From the NCBI GenBank assembly GCA_002104945.1, contig MCFH01000003.1:310001-374000 (forward strand): a stretch of 64,000 nucleotides of DNA, written 5' to 3'. This stretch comes from Piromyces finnis finn. Lineage: Eukaryota; Fungi; Neocallimastigomycota. Of this stretch, positions 41,087 to 47,562 are shown one piece after another. The notes beneath the pieces were generated by a model, which worked only from the letters and a program-made list of their open reading frames with translations, was not told where the DNA came from and did no database searches. Made by a program: the position numbers and the translations under genes. Each line of letters starts with the position of its first letter. Position 1 is the first letter of the stretch.

Positions 41087-42582
41087 TTAGGCAAATTCAT
41101 CAAATTCTTTTTCTTTTCTCATATTCTTCCAATAGATTAATGATAATGCAATAGCAACAAGATAAACAATACAAAAGACATAGTTTAATATATACATATA
41201 CTTTAATTTCTTTTGAATTAAAGGAACAAGATATTCCTTACAACCATAAGCTTGGGATATTGCTAAATCATCAATACTTTGTACTGTTTGAGTTTGTTGA
41301 ATTTGTTGACGTCTTTCTAATCCTTCACTTCTCTTCCATTGAAAACCACCACCGTTATTTCCACCATCCATCATTGGATCTTGTTGTACATTATCTTGAG
41401 GTTGGAAATTATCTTGTTGTTGAAAATTATCTTGTTGTTGGAAATTATCTTGTTGTTGGAAATTATCTTGAGGTTGTTGTTGTTGTATTTGTGGTTGTGG
41501 TTGTTGTTGTTGACCACCAACAGTACTGTCAGAATCAACAACACTATCTGCAGTACTAAATTTATTTCTGTAGGAATCATTCTTTAATACATTAGCTGGA
41601 TTTTTAATACCTTGAGAGTATTGATTAATAAAATCAACATCTGTACTTGAACAAAATCCAGAAGCTACTGGTAAATCATTATAGGCTAAATAACCACAAC
41701 AATTATATTCATCTTGAATTCTCATTCTGATAGGATCAGTGTAAACATCCCACCATGATATAGCCATATCTCTTTGAGTAAATCTTGTTGCATCCAATAA
41801 TTTTTTGGCAACATATAAATGTCCTAATAATGCCATGGAAGCTAAAACTGAAAAAGTTAAAATGATAGGCTTCCAATTAGTGTATGCCCCAGAGTATCCA
41901 GTGAAGGATACAAATATTACAAATACTGCCAATATTATCATAGCATATCTACAATTAGCATTAATATCGTTTAAATCTTTACCAGAAAATCCACCACGAA
42001 TAATGACAAATAAAGAGAAAAATAACAAGTATAAACCAACAATAAGTAATATAACACATATGATTTTGAATTGTTTTCTTCCTTCAATATTAGGTACAGA
42101 TCTTTTATTTTTATCATTTTCATAGGTATAAATATGTTCTTGACTTCTTTCGGCTAAAGGGAATGAAGCTTCTGTTGCAGGACTATTATTACTTATCTTT
42201 CTATGAATTAATTTATTTTGACCTTTACGCTATAATAGGAAAATTAAGTTCATATTTAAAAATAATTTTATTGAATAAAAAGGGGGAAGAAAATATTTAT
42301 TAATAATTTATAATATTTATCAATTGTTGTTACTATTAATTATTAATTATATTTTTATTTCTTTTTTTTTATGTAAAAAAAAAGAGATAAACACTAACAT
42401 CAATATTATTTTCATTTATATTTTCATTTTCTTTTCTATTTTCATTTATAATATTATCTTTACTATTATTCTATATAATTTTAATATAATATACATTTAT
42501 ATTAATATTAAAATAAAAAGGGGGTTTATTTTTTGTAACACTTTAATTATATATATACATTAATACTTACAATTAAATCCAT
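41087..42582 (-). CDS. Tetraspanin-like four-transmembrane protein (paralog A); join(42582..42571,42229..41087), about 384 aa
   Basis: ATG GAT TTA ATT|gtaagt ... ttatag|CGT AAA GGT; the frame is open from 42229. TM1 ICVILLIVGLYLLFFSLFVII, TM2 YAMIILAVFVIFVSFTGYSGA, TM3 IILTFSVLASMALLGHLYVA, large loop with IQDEYNCCGY..GFC..GCKEYL, TM4 YILNYVFCIVYLVAIALSLIYW. The CCG motif in the loop between TM3 and TM4 is the tetraspanin hallmark. Confidence 0.85.
41392..41472 (-). repeat. 18-bp coding tandem repeat (QQQDNF)n in tetraspanin A
   Basis: Plus-strand unit GAAATTATCTTGTTGTTG, three near-perfect copies plus variant flanking copies. Confidence 0.85.
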
Positions 42583-45500
42583 GTTATATATATGTTACAC
42601 TATAAATATCAATATATAAATAATCAATTAAAAAACATAAAACATTAGTAATTTACCTCTTAAATTATTATATTATTATGTTATGATTATCGTTTATTAT
42701 CATTATTATTATTTCATTTGAATAATACTTACAAAATTACTTTTTTTAAAAAAAATAAAAAAATTAAAATATTGAATGAGGTGATATATAGATAGTATAT
42801 ATACTTATTTTAATTTAATGAGAATAAAAAATATATATATTTTTTTTTAAATTATTTTTTTTTTACTACAGTTTATTTTGACCAAATTAAATTATTTTTA
42901 TTGTTTAAAATGGAAAATATTATTATGTATATAATGATGTTAATTATATATTCTTAAGGTAAAAAATAATAATGGTTTGGTGTTTAAAATAAATAATACT
43001 TTAAATAAATGTAATTTATCTAGATCGGATATAAAATATTTTTTATTTATTATTTATTTTGTTGGCTTTTGCTAAAGTATAATTAATGTAGAGTATTAAT
43101 GGCTATTTACTGTTTTGTTTTTTTAAAAAAAGTTTATAATTTTTATTTTAATGTTTATTTTTTTTTCTCTAAATCTTTTGAAAAGAATAGTTCTTTTTTT
43201 GTTGTTGTTGTTGCTTTTTTGTTTTTATTTGCTTAATTTAACAGAGAATTGCCTTTGAATTAAAATAAAATATAACTTTTCTTTTAAATCTTTTTGATGC
43301 AAAAGTCACTTTTTTTTAATTATTATTATTATTTTATATTAGGTCACTTTCTTTCATTTTAAAAATTTTTTTTAGAAAAAAAAAATTCTTTGTTTTTATA
43401 TATAAAAAAATCATCACCATATAAAAATATTTATTCCTATTATTTTTCAATTATGATACAATCATTGATTTTTTATTAATTAAATTCACCGTCTTTTTAA
43501 TAAAATATATAGAAAATATATTATAATATATCATATAATATATTATATATTTTATGTAATACATTTTAATACATTATAATACATATTTTTTGTTTAGTAA
43601 TAAAGTTAGACGTTTCTTTATTTTCTTTTCAAATATTCATATATTATTATATTTATTGTAGTTTACTATAATATATTATATTATTATTTAATTATTTTAT
43701 TACCTTAATTTTAATAAACCAATATATTAATAATATTATTATAATATATTATTAGTAGGACAAATTAAAGGTAGCCAATAATATTCATATATTTTAAATT
43801 AATATTTTTAACTTATTATAATTTAATATATTGTATAATATATAAAATAATTTCATAAAAAGAAAAAAAGAAGGTTGAGTTTAAAATTAAATTTCTATTT
43901 CTATTTTTTAATTGACTACAAATATATTAAAATATATTAACTCAATATAATTTATTTAAATAATAATATATTAAATTGGATAAATATATCATTGAATTCT
44001 CTCCACCATCCAAATTTTTTTGTCTGGCCAAATAAAGAGCAACAATAAAAAATAAAGAAGGACAGCAGTAGCAGCAGCAGTAGCAGATTTGTCAATAAAA
44101 AAAAGGCATAGTATTAAAAGTTAACTGGAATTCTAGCGATAATTTCATTGAGCCATTAAATAAATGAAGCTTCTTTTTTTTTTAGTTACAATAATAATAA
44201 ATTATATCAAAAAAAAAATGTATCTCTTTTTTTTTTTTTTACAGTAAAACAAAGGCAAAAAAGAAAAACTTTATATGATGGCCATTGAAATTAAAAAAAA
44301 AAGACAATTCATAAAGACTCTAATAATTATTCATTAAAAAATAAAAGAATTCTTTCATATTTGAAAGCAAATGCTTTTCCTATTTTTTTCTACTCTATAT
44401 ATTACTATTAATAGAATTATTCTCTTCTAAATAAAGTTGAAATATATTTTCTGATGCATCTTTTTAAAAAAAGAAAAAAAGTTACATTTTTTATCCTTAG
44501 CAATAACCAAAATTGGCATATATAAAACTACACATATTTCTAAAGATTCTAAAAAAAAAAAGAAACTCTGTAAACTTTTTCAAAGTTTTTTCTAATAAAA
44601 TAGTCAAAAAGAAAGTTACACAAATTACATCGTAATACGTTATGTATACATTATAAATGATTTATTTTTTTTTTTTTTTTTAAAATGGAAACCTTTGTTG
44701 ATTATAAAAAAAAAAAAAAGAAAAAGAAAATAGATAAAAATATAGATATAAATAGGTTATGAATTAAAATAATTGAATAATTGAAAAAGATTTTTAATTA
44801 TTTCTAGTTTTATATACAAAGTGTAACTAATCACATCTTAAAAAAAAATAATAATAAATAGAGTTAACTTGTTAGTGAAAAAATATTTACATAATTTAAA
44901 TGTGTTATTACTATGATATATTGTTTGCTTTTAAATTTTTTAAAATTAATTATTGATGATTCATATCGACACGATATGATGGTATAAGATAGTTATTTAA
45001 TAATCAATTATTCTGATCATTAACCATATTAATATTTTAAATAATAAAATATAAAGTTGCATAATAACTCAATGAATATTGCTGTTTATACGGTGTAGTA
45101 GGATAGTGTGTGTGATGTACATCCAACCCTCATTCATGAATTCTTGATATTTTTTAATCAATGAAATATCAACATTGAAGCCCTGATGTACAAAAAACAT
45201 TAGGATTGTTCCTTTGCCGTTCCCTTGATAATGTTAAATGGTCTTACTAAAGGAAATACGAATAATAGGAATTATTTTTAGTATGGAAAATCCTCTATCT
45301 ATCTCTTGCAATCTTGCAATGAACTTAATAAAAGTAATTCATTCAAATATTTTTGTTTCGCTTCATCGATATCGATATATACTTTAATAGCATCTATTTT
45401 TTTTTTCTGATAATACTACATTATTATTACATTAGTTTCATTAGATTTAACAAAAAAAAAAAAAAGAAATTTTTGCTTTTTGCTTTTTGCTTTTTGCTTT

Positions 45501-46172
45501 TTTTTTTTTTTTTTTATTTTATTTTATTTTATTTTTAGTAATTTTTTTTTATTTTATTTTATTTTAATTTTTTATTATTATTATCATTTTTTAGTTTATT
45601 TACTGATAATAAATAAATAGGACGATGTTGTTTAATATTTTTAAAATTAAAAATAATAATGAATATATAATATATATAATATGTTTTTATAAAAGGTAAA
45701 GAAAAAAAAAAAAAGATTAAAAAGATTATTTTATAATCTGACAAAATATAACTAATTCCCTAAACGTATAAAAGATTTGATTGAAAAGTTGATTTATGAA
45801 AAAAAAAAAGATATCTCTTATTAGTTATATATAAAACATAATAATTTATAATAATAATTATATATTTCTTAATTTTTTTTCTAAAAAAAAGTTTATATTT
45901 AAAATAGGTATTTGTATACATGGAAACATATATACTTCCCATTTTCATAAATAAATAAATAAAAAATTTAAAGTCTATAATAGTTAATTATTTTTATATA
46001 TATTACTATTATTATTACTATTTATATATAATATTTATTTTCTTTTTTTTTTTCAAAAGAGATATAAAGTGTTAGGATTATAATCTTTTATGATAGTTGT
46101 TACTGAAAAAATAAAAGTAGATTTTTTTTTTGAATAGGAAATTATTATATGGGTATTTTTTAAAAGATTAGC

Positions 46173-47562
46173 TTATGCAAATTCATCAAATTCCTTAATT
46201 CCACGAAGAGTTCTCCAATAAATGAATCCCATAATAGATCCAAGAACATAGGGTACAGTTAAACCAGCTAATGCAAGATAGACAGTTTTTAATTTACCTT
46301 GGACTAATGGAGATAAATATTCCTTACAACCCTTTGGTGTACTTTCATCAATTTGTTTTGAAACTGTTTGTTGTCCATAATTTTGTTGTCCATAATTTTG
46401 TTGTCCATAATTTTGTTGTCCATAATTTTGTTGATCTACTACTGGTTGTTGGACTACTGGTTGTTGTTGGTTCATTCCAGCATCACCTTGGAAATCTTCT
46501 TGTCCTTCTTGATTCATTCCAGCATTATCTTGTAAATCTGGTCCACCTTGTGGAACGACTTGTCTCTTTTTCAAGTCTCCAGCATTTCCAGTATAACCAG
46601 TATTGTCATCTACAATATTACCTGCTTGATAGTTTGCAACATTACCATTTCCAACATTACCATTATCAACATTGCCAGCTGTGTAATCAGTTGTATCAGT
46701 GGTGTAATCATTTGCACCATTTGCACCATTTCCAGCATTTCCAATATCACCATTAAATCCAGTATTGCCAGTATTACCAGGAGTACCAGGAGTACTAACA
46801 GTACCTGGACTAGTTTCAATAGTAATTTTATCTTTGTGATGTTGGTAATAGGAATCCTTCTTTTTAACATCAGCTGGTTCAGTGATATCGGCTGAAACCA
46901 TTGTATAAGAATCAATAAGTTCCTTTGGACAAAAATTTGAAGTAACTGCAAAATCTTTAATATTTAAATAACCACAACAAGAATTACTATCTTGTATTTG
47001 TACTTTAACTTCATCTTCAATGTCATCCCACCATGCTCTAGCCATATGAATAGTAGAAGAATCAGCAGCATGATAGAAAATGTATGTAATATATGCGTGG
47101 AAAGATAAACACATCAATGAAAGAATTGAGAAAGTAACAATTAATGTTTTCCAGTGGGTAAAAGCACCAAATCCTCCTATTACTGAAGTAAATATAGCAA
47201 ATACGGCAAGCATAAATAAAGCTATTTTTATATAGTATTATAATGGTTATACGATTAATATTATTATGTTGGTATTAAATTATAAAAAAAACTATAATAT
47301 TTTTTAAAATATATAAAAAAATTATTATTTGGTCTTTACCTGTTTTAGCTTCTGAAGGAACATCATAATAACCTTTACCAGACCAACCCTTTTTAAAACC
47401 AATCATTATACCTAAAAAGAAAAGAACAATACCTACTACACCGATTAATCCATCTAAAAAGTAAAATATTTTTCTTTTGCTTGAGTCAACATTGCTATGT
47501 TTTTGACCACGCTTAAAAGTGCGGTTATATGATTCATTATAAAGTAAACTTTGATTCTCCAT
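46173..47562 (-). CDS. Tetraspanin-like four-transmembrane protein (paralog B); join(47562..47340,47221..46173), about 423 aa
   Basis: Exon 1 MENQ..IFYFLDGLIGVVGIVLFFLGIMIGF..AKT G|gtaaag; acceptor aaaatag|CT TTA TTT ATG. TM2 and TM3 follow, then a loop with IQDSNSCCGY..NFC..GCKEYL, TM4, and the C-terminus KEFDEFA* shared with paralog A. Confidence 0.85.
46368..46432 (-). repeat. 15-bp coding tandem repeat (QQNYG)x4 in tetraspanin B
   Basis: Plus-strand unit TTGTTGTCCATAATT repeated about four times. Confidence 0.9.

Follow-up and report, generated by a model that had tools for sequence, protein, structure and literature searches.

Tetraspanins organise membrane microdomains, vesicles and processes of fusion and adhesion in animals, plants and fungi, and the variable region of their large second extracellular loop (EC2) decides partner specificity. 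In the fungal tetraspanins, EC2 has a length of 70–81 amino acids (aa), and the spacer between its third and fourth cysteines (Cys3 and Cys4) spans 10–19 aa in Pls1, 9–10 in Tsp3, 12 in Tsp4 and about 7 in Tsp2 (Lambou et al. 2008, PMC2278132, Additional file 2). The Tsp2 proteins of Basidiomycota and Rhizopus combine an EC2 of 72 aa and the motif CCGY-x(12)-CY-x(5)-GCK with N-terminal tails of 78–292 aa and C-terminal tails of 48–94 aa (PMC2278132). Here we analysed a stretch of 64,000 nucleotides from the anaerobic horse-gut fungus Piromyces finnis (assembly GCA_002104945.1, contig MCFH01000003.1, positions 310,001 to 374,000 of the forward strand; hereafter the window, to which coordinates without a locus name refer). 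The window carries two adjacent tetraspanin genes, here called A and B, which resemble Tsp2 and whose Cys3–Cys4 spacers hold a conserved dibasic motif, L-x-[KR]-R-Q. Based on this motif, we lean slightly towards the prediction that A and B are two-chain tetraspanins matured by kexin.

A comparison with Tsp2 revealed both similarities and differences. A and B share with it the four transmembrane (TM) helices, the pattern CCGY-x(12)-C ... GCK, a short first extracellular loop (EC1) and an inner loop of 2–4 residues. However, their spacers measure 136 and 200 aa instead of about 7, they contain the conserved L-x-[KR]-R-Q motif, and the total EC2 reaches roughly 190–270 aa. Their tails are short (N-terminal about 54 aa in A and 37 aa in B, C-terminal about 15–18 aa), and neither the full Tsp2 EC2 motif nor the long Tsp2 tails are present; the P. 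finnis paralogs L001, L002 and L004 do resemble Tsp2 in their long N-terminal tails. The Coprinopsis Tsp2 sequences in the supplement of the earlier survey have a spacer without a dibasic site (PMC2278132), and the spacer of about 7 residues in the Tsp2 proteins of Dikarya and Rhizopus leaves no room for such a site.

Among animal tetraspanins, peripherin-2/ROM1, uroplakins Ia and Ib and the TspanC8 proteins share with A and B the tetraspanin fold and an EC2 that is variable and binds partners, and the A model has some of its best structural matches in this group. However, their large EC2 is folded, carries extra cysteines and disulfides and has no low-complexity sequence, and we know of no case in which one of these tetraspanins is itself cut. 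Furin cleavage in the tetraspanin literature that we retrieved concerned partner proteins (UPK2, EWI-2), never the tetraspanin itself. Fungal kexin prefers Arg at P1, Lys or Arg at P2 and an aliphatic residue at P4, and LEKR followed by Q is a junction in secreted fungal enzymes, at which the Gln becomes pyroglutamate; to our knowledge, Gln at P1′ is not a requirement of kexin. Fungal kexin substrates are like A and B in the KR or RR pair, the aliphatic P4, the Gln that often comes next and, in some members, the tandem sites. The known substrates are nevertheless either type I membrane proteins or precursors that are soluble and secreted, whereas the site in A and B lies inside the putatively disulfide-closed loop of a polytopic protein, so that a cut would yield a membrane protein of two chains and release no product. 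A and B also differ from the Kex2-processed repeat proteins (KEPs) in having no signal peptide, no repeated cargo and repeats that are not bounded by dibasic sites.

The nearest architecture is an engineered one. In the tANCHOR/ENCOREP scaffolds, tobacco etch virus (TEV) protease sites flank a cargo in the large loop of a tetraspanin, and the protein reaches the surface, can be cut and releases the peptide (PMC13015245). These scaffolds are synthetic and evolutionarily unrelated to A and B, and show only that such an architecture is viable. In full-text literature searches, we found neither a report that kexin or furin cuts a tetraspanin within one of its loops nor a study of the tetraspanins of Neocallimastigomycota or chytrids. 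The original prediction, which had been made from the letters of the window, likewise knew of no described system with this architecture, and our searches found no precedent for it.

Results

A conserved dibasic site in the Cys3–Cys4 inserts

The insert of gene A (41243..41650, minus strand) encodes 136 aa, 34% of which are Q or N, and is predicted to be disordered, and the insert of gene B (46329..46928, minus strand) encodes 200 aa rich in G, Q, N, D and T. Two dibasic sites were found in insert A, namely F-Q-W-K-R followed by S (41327..41344, minus strand) and L-E-R-R followed by Q (41306..41320, minus strand), the latter being the family-wide L-x-[KR]-R-Q motif. Insert B has one site, L-K-K-R followed by Q (46560..46574, minus strand), and in the B clade no other part of the insert forms a conserved island. 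The tandem repeats of the two inserts occupy different positions relative to the dibasic site. An 18-bp unit lies upstream of it in A (5.0 copies, 88% matches, 41381..41470) and encodes QQQDNF units, whereas a 15-bp unit lies downstream of it in B (4.5 copies, 100% matches, 46367..46433) and encodes QQNYG units. Additional short tandem repeats of 15 and 9 bp (46633-46677, 46709-46740 and 46759-46795) encode the G/N-rich part of insert B. The tandem repeats in both inserts are slippage products, and the 100% identity of the QQNYG repeat at the DNA level indicates that it arose very recently.

These results agree with the original prediction in each anatomical detail that it gave. It had described tandem paralogs that keep the four-cysteine EC2 scaffold, with extracellular inserts of about 136 and 200 aa, dibasic motifs at WKR before S and LERR before Q in A and at LKKR before Q in B, and unrelated repeats on opposite sides of the shared site. 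The lengths proved to be exact, and the scaffold and the tandem arrangement were borne out by the analyses described below, with which the topology is consistent.

Absence of the dibasic site from orthologs had been named beforehand as a finding that would refute the prediction, and the site turned out to be kept, more widely than proposed, in all gut-fungal paralog clades as well as in a clade of chytrid type. In the B clade (nine proteins from several gut-fungal lineages), the insert varies between 145 and 243 aa and from Q/N-rich to G/A-rich in composition, while [DE]-L-[KR]-[KR]-R-Q is kept in all nine proteins and forms the only stretch of at least 85% identity in about 190 hypervariable alignment columns. 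Every member of the A clade has a [KR]R site, usually L-x-[KR]-R-Q, 16–27 residues before Cys4, and a second [KR]R site lies 7–13 residues upstream in eight of the 11 sequences listed. Each of the five tetraspanin genes in the P. finnis genome encodes, between Cys3 and Cys4, a [KR]R pair with Leu at P4. A [KR]R pair in this interval was found in every tetraspanin clade of anaerobic gut fungi.

The L002 paralog clade has a loop of only 36–37 aa, which contains no low-complexity sequence and appears as a low-confidence coil in the AlphaFold2 (AF2) model, and still has two conserved sites 20–22 residues apart. Considering that the site is conserved while the composition and length of the insert vary, and that it is present in this short-loop clade, the conserved feature is the site and not the low-complexity arms. 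Two sites spaced by 6–21 residues are a repeated finding in the A, L002, L004 and chytrid-type clades. Members of the B and L001 clades carry one site only. Altogether 81 sites were tallied in 52 proteins, with Leu at P4 in 48, Lys at P2 in 66 and Gln at P1′ in 31. When each insert was shuffled, L-x-[KR]-R was found to be enriched in 31 of 34 family members, with per-sequence p values of 0.0006–0.03.

Several further features were observed in the paralogs. In the L002 clade (L002:1078-2184, plus strand), the second dibasic site is preceded at a distance of 5 residues by an invariant N-x-S sequon (N303, S305, L306, K308, R309), and a glycan at this sequon could gate cleavage. The long N-terminal tail of this clade is rich in Arg, Asp and Asn, with YRxDN-type repeats in some orthologs, and the Anaeromyces and Neocallimastix relatives of L002 carry the label 'Tsp2' in UniRef. 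Very long low-complexity cytosolic N-terminal tails, Pro/Asn/Gln-rich or Ser/Asn-rich, are found in the P. finnis tetraspanins L001:1435-3030 (minus strand, 531 aa) and L004:820-2799 (plus strand, 659 aa), whose EC2 inserts have 74 and 243 aa, respectively, with L-N-K-R in each.

Distribution beyond gut fungi and phylogeny

Word-based protein searches reached gut-fungal relatives only, and the chytrid-type clade surfaced in a full profile search against 1.84 billion representatives. This search returned 508 tetraspanins at E ≤ 1e-3, 19 of them at E ≤ 1e-30, and the best 150 of the 508 were examined. Among the 150 matches listed, the chytrid-type clade is marked by the C-terminus ...NHIYD and by one to three tandem sites, ending in KR or RR followed by Q, in the Cys3–Cys4 loop. 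Its members include Spizellomyces punctatus SPPG_04810 (labelled 'Tsp2'), an ortholog from S. 'palustris' and unnamed metagenomic relatives. Of the other tetraspanin matches listed, 20 of 109 have any [KR]R and eight of 109 have L-x-[KR]-R, and at least six of these eight are either members of the chytrid-type clade or a fragment from the gut-fungal clade with the short loop. The loop with a putative cut site thus appears, on the sequences retrieved so far, to be limited to gut fungi, Spizellomyces and unnamed metagenomic relatives of the Spizellomyces clade.

A quick maximum-likelihood tree was computed from gut-fungal, chytrid-type and unnamed tetraspanins only, with retention of those insert columns in which at least 30% of rows had a residue. 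It placed A and B as sister clades (support 84 in the Shimodaira–Hasegawa-like approximate likelihood ratio test, SH-aLRT) inside the gut-fungal group, and the chytrid-type clade apart from the motif-less tetraspanins; because of the insert columns, its deep branching is indicative only. The A and B proteins are 39–46% identical in the conserved core outside the insert. We read A and B as tetraspanins of Tsp2 type that form a tandem pair of long standing.

Coding status and disorder of the inserts

Both inserts are in frame and stop-free and have a coding-like GC content, whereas the flanking non-coding DNA has 8–15% GC. A spliced metatranscript of an A ortholog (L009; Joint Genome Institute, JGI; 1360 nt) retains an A/P-rich insert in frame. 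Genomic DNA of Neocallimastix lanati codes for a complete B-type insert that is colinear with the 465-aa protein P0022, and insert B is also present in the annotated P. finnis protein P0017. In the AF2 model of gene A, residues 225–323 have a predicted local distance difference test (pLDDT) value below 50, suggesting that insert A is probably disordered.

The deposited Neocallimastix models P0023, P0009 and P0012 splice out part of the low-complexity EC2 insert. The N. lanati model P0023 skips the conserved dibasic motif, yet the genomic DNA (L012:10374-11627) encodes the motif in frame. The skip is therefore an annotation artefact, and it would mask the feature in proteome-based surveys.

Tetraspanin identity, fold and topology

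Both proteins matched the Pfam tetraspanin family PF00335 above its gathering cut-off of 32.1 bits (42.3 bits for A and 40.0 bits for B). They show the layout of the family, with four TM helices, a small EC1, a very short inner loop and a large EC2. Confident TM helices were found in the AF2 model of gene A at residues 51–78, 91–117, 120–149 and 331–372, together with EC2 helices, and four hydropathy peaks were seen both in P0017 (B) and in P0001 (an A ortholog). The CCG motif, Cys3 and Cys4 are invariant across all aligned members, and EC2 has exactly four cysteines, with none added in the insert. A Foldseek search against the PDB with the A model gave tetraspanins at all of ranks 1–10 (CD53, CD9, PRPH2/ROM1, Tspan15, uroplakin and CD81). 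Disorder in 40% of the model kept the E-values weak (8e-3 and up), and the identity therefore rests on the ranking of the hits together with the Pfam match.

By analogy with the topology of the family, it follows that the N- and C-termini should be cytosolic and the EC2 insert lumenal or extracellular. The charge distribution is consistent with this assignment, as the tails are net basic and EC2 is net acidic, with 17 Lys and Arg versus 34 Asp and Glu in the EC2 of gene B.

The cytosolic tails contain short motifs of their own. In both the A and B clades, the C-terminus ends in a near-invariant K-E-F-D-E-F-A (41090-41122 in A and 46176-46205 in B, minus strand), and R371, K374, E375, D377, E378 and F379 are at least 90% conserved across the proteins of the two clades. 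This ending looks like a sorting or docking motif, either a di-acidic export signal or a C-terminal ligand. The N-terminal tail carries E-H-I-Y-T-Y-D-N-D-K-N-[KR]-R-S-V-P in the A clade (about 42080-42140) and L-L-Y-N-E-S-Y-x-R-T-F-K-R-G in the B clade (47500-47545), which may be tyrosine-based sorting or phosphorylation sites.

Gene models and genomic neighbourhood

The main exon of gene A (41087..42229, minus strand) is an open reading frame (ORF) of 380 codons plus stop that covers the four TM helices, EC2 and the C-terminal tail, and this exon was used for all analyses of A. A first exon of 12 nt (42571..42582, minus strand) is predicted to encode Met-Asp-Leu-Ile ahead of a GTAAGT donor, with the acceptor AG just before 42229. 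This exon is backed by the ortholog metatranscript L009, which has the same 5′ context and joins MDLI straight to RKGQ. Gene B consists of exon 1 (47340..47562, minus strand), which encodes the N-terminal tail and TM1 and has a phase-1 GT donor at 47339, and exon 2 (46173..47221, minus strand), an ORF that encodes TM2–TM4, EC2, the tail and the stop. It was analysed through these exons and the database record P0017. The translation of gene B is 100% identical to the annotated P. finnis protein BCR36DRAFT_316933 (P0017, 423 aa), and the lengths of the two exons sum to these 423 aa, so that our model agrees with the annotated protein. A word search of 5.8 billion proteins found one such identical record for gene B and no 100%-identical record for gene A, so that the P. 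finnis gene set may lack an annotation of A.

A and B are adjacent on the minus strand with about 3.6 kb between them, and no convincing ORF or gene was found in this spacer. It contains only two small GC bumps (43950-44200 and 45000-45400, with a GC fraction of 0.26–0.32) in DNA that otherwise has 8–15% GC. A stop-free stretch of 54 codons with 34% GC (45072-45233, minus strand) may be a small exon, the remnant of a gene or an island with regulatory function. The GC content is 16–30% in the window and about 20% in the genome, whose assembly comprises 56.46 Mb in 232 contigs. In N. lanati, the A ortholog does not lie within 10 kb of the B ortholog, though both models are reported on the same 2.34-Mb contig.

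Discussion

The P. finnis genome has three loci with a P domain, one of which (L006) combines it with an S8 domain and has yeast kexin as its best PDB match (E 8e-108). The sites of A (LERR and WKR) and B (LKKR) have the dibasic P2–P1 pair recognised by kexin, for which an aliphatic residue at P4 is preferred. A loop that is predicted to be disordered and lumenal, carries a kexin-type site and passes through the Golgi would be expected to be cut. We propose that kexin in the Golgi would cut the disordered Cys3–Cys4 loop at L-x-[KR]-R, before the Q, and that two chains would result, one with TM1–TM3 and the EC2 head and the other with the stalk and TM4. In solved four-cysteine tetraspanins such as CD81, the first Cys of CCG pairs with the last Cys of EC2, and the second with the third. 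With CD81-like pairing, a cut between Cys3 and Cys4 would give two disulfide-linked chains, and these would be held together by TM packing as well as by the bond between the first and fourth cysteines. The new N-terminal Gln could cyclise to pyroglutamate, and where two sites exist, as in A and the short-loop paralogs, a linker of 6–21 residues would be removed. Possible consequences of the cut are a looser EC2 lid, new termini available to a partner, or the loss of the short linker.

Once the loop is cut, its flanks would be dangling ends under little structural constraint, and replication slippage could inflate them lineage by lineage on either side of the site. Relaxed flanks together with slippage in an AT-rich genome would explain why unrelated repeats lie on opposite sides of the same motif in A and B. 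The broader proposal is that the tetraspanins of zoosporic fungi (anaerobic gut fungi and chytrids) are obligately matured by kexin in the putatively disulfide-closed variable loop of EC2, that the loop is then free to evolve low-complexity arms, and that paired sites excise a peptide. We regard this as plausible but tentative, and stop just short of favouring it.

Several observations weigh against maturation by kexin. Three sequences have Met, Tyr or Asn at P4 instead of Leu, and the P0048 clade has a weak site only. Gln is strongly preferred at P1′, and this may mean that the motif is read by something other than kexin. The disulfide pairing is borrowed from solved animal tetraspanins, and AF2 models the loop with too little confidence for its exposure to be judged directly. 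Moreover, a conserved basic motif is no proof that a protein is cut. Alternatively, the L-x-[KR]-R-Q island may be a short linear motif that acts without proteolysis in a single-chain protein, such as a docking site for a partner, a basic patch that binds glycans or lipids, or an element of folding and quality control. In favour of such a role are the P1′ Gln and the frequent acidic residue at P5 ([DE]-L-[KR]-[KR]-R-Q in the B clade), both of which exceed the needs of kexin as we know them, and the weak helix (residues 302–313) that spans the site in the AF2 model of A. However, the motif fits the preference of fungal kexin for an aliphatic P4, a basic P2 and Arg at P1, it lies in predicted disordered lumenal sequence that must cross the Golgi of an organism whose genome encodes kexin, and many members have two or three tandem sites only a few residues apart, which is typical of processing and odd for binding. 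We therefore consider a purely binding role distinctly less probable than cleavage, although it deserves serious attention.

Another alternative is that the tetraspanin is a membrane-anchored precursor, and that cutting at paired sites sets free a short peptide with biological activity, or that cutting sheds a long arm into the medium. The pairs 6–21 residues apart in A, L002, L004 and the chytrid-type clades, and the release of peptides by engineered tetraspanin scaffolds with protease sites around a loop cargo (PMC13015245), are in favour of this alternative, but the stretches that separate paired sites are short, show little conservation between clades and form no repeated cargo units, and the single site of the B and L001 clades would free nothing while the disulfides hold, so that such a precursor seems unlikely. 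The original prediction had instead viewed the Q/N/Y/G repeats as arms, prion-like or adhesive in nature, that the cell surface or vesicles would display, and this part of it was not supported. The best 60-aa window does contain 53% (A) and 45% (B) Q+N, and B has four perfect QQNYG units that resemble the oligopeptide repeats of Sup35. However, the inserts of orthologs are A/P-, G/A/N- or T/D-rich, with Q+N in the best window ranging from 12 to 53% and lying at 12–40% in most, and this wide spread rules out prion-like composition as a conserved trait. The window of A also has 12% charged residues and 8% Pro, that of B has 12% charged residues, the perfectly repeated QQNYG tract is very young, neither the length nor the composition of the arms is conserved, and the site is equally conserved in the 36-aa-loop paralogs, which have no such arms. 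Q/N richness thus appears from these comparisons to be a peculiarity of P. finnis, and the prion-like or adhesive reading is at best lineage-specific; selection for such arms is in our view slightly less credible even than the peptide precursor. That the inserts are not protein at all, being unrecognised introns or artefacts of assembly or annotation, might be suspected from the Neocallimastix models P0009, P0012 and P0023, which do not contain part of the region. However, the open, in-frame and coding-like inserts, together with the annotated P0017, speak against this, and the retention of the insert in metatranscript L009 and the N. lanati genomic DNA rule it out for practical purposes, so we give it hardly any credence.

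The case of the Neocallimastix models also carries a practical warning, as gene predictors splice low-complexity loops out and deposited models thereby lose the motif or its flanks. Spizellomyces punctatus is genetically tractable (PMC7213984) and carries a member of the family, and the cleavage idea is therefore directly testable there. Two-chain maturation of A and B, if true, is a feature unknown in the tetraspanin superfamily, and the proteins would offer a natural example of a cleavable display loop, an architecture that protein engineers have recently built. A site kept across gut-fungal genera and the chytrid-type clade amid changing surroundings would define a new regulatory step for tetraspanins, and would be the first functional handle on the tetraspanins of early-diverging fungi.

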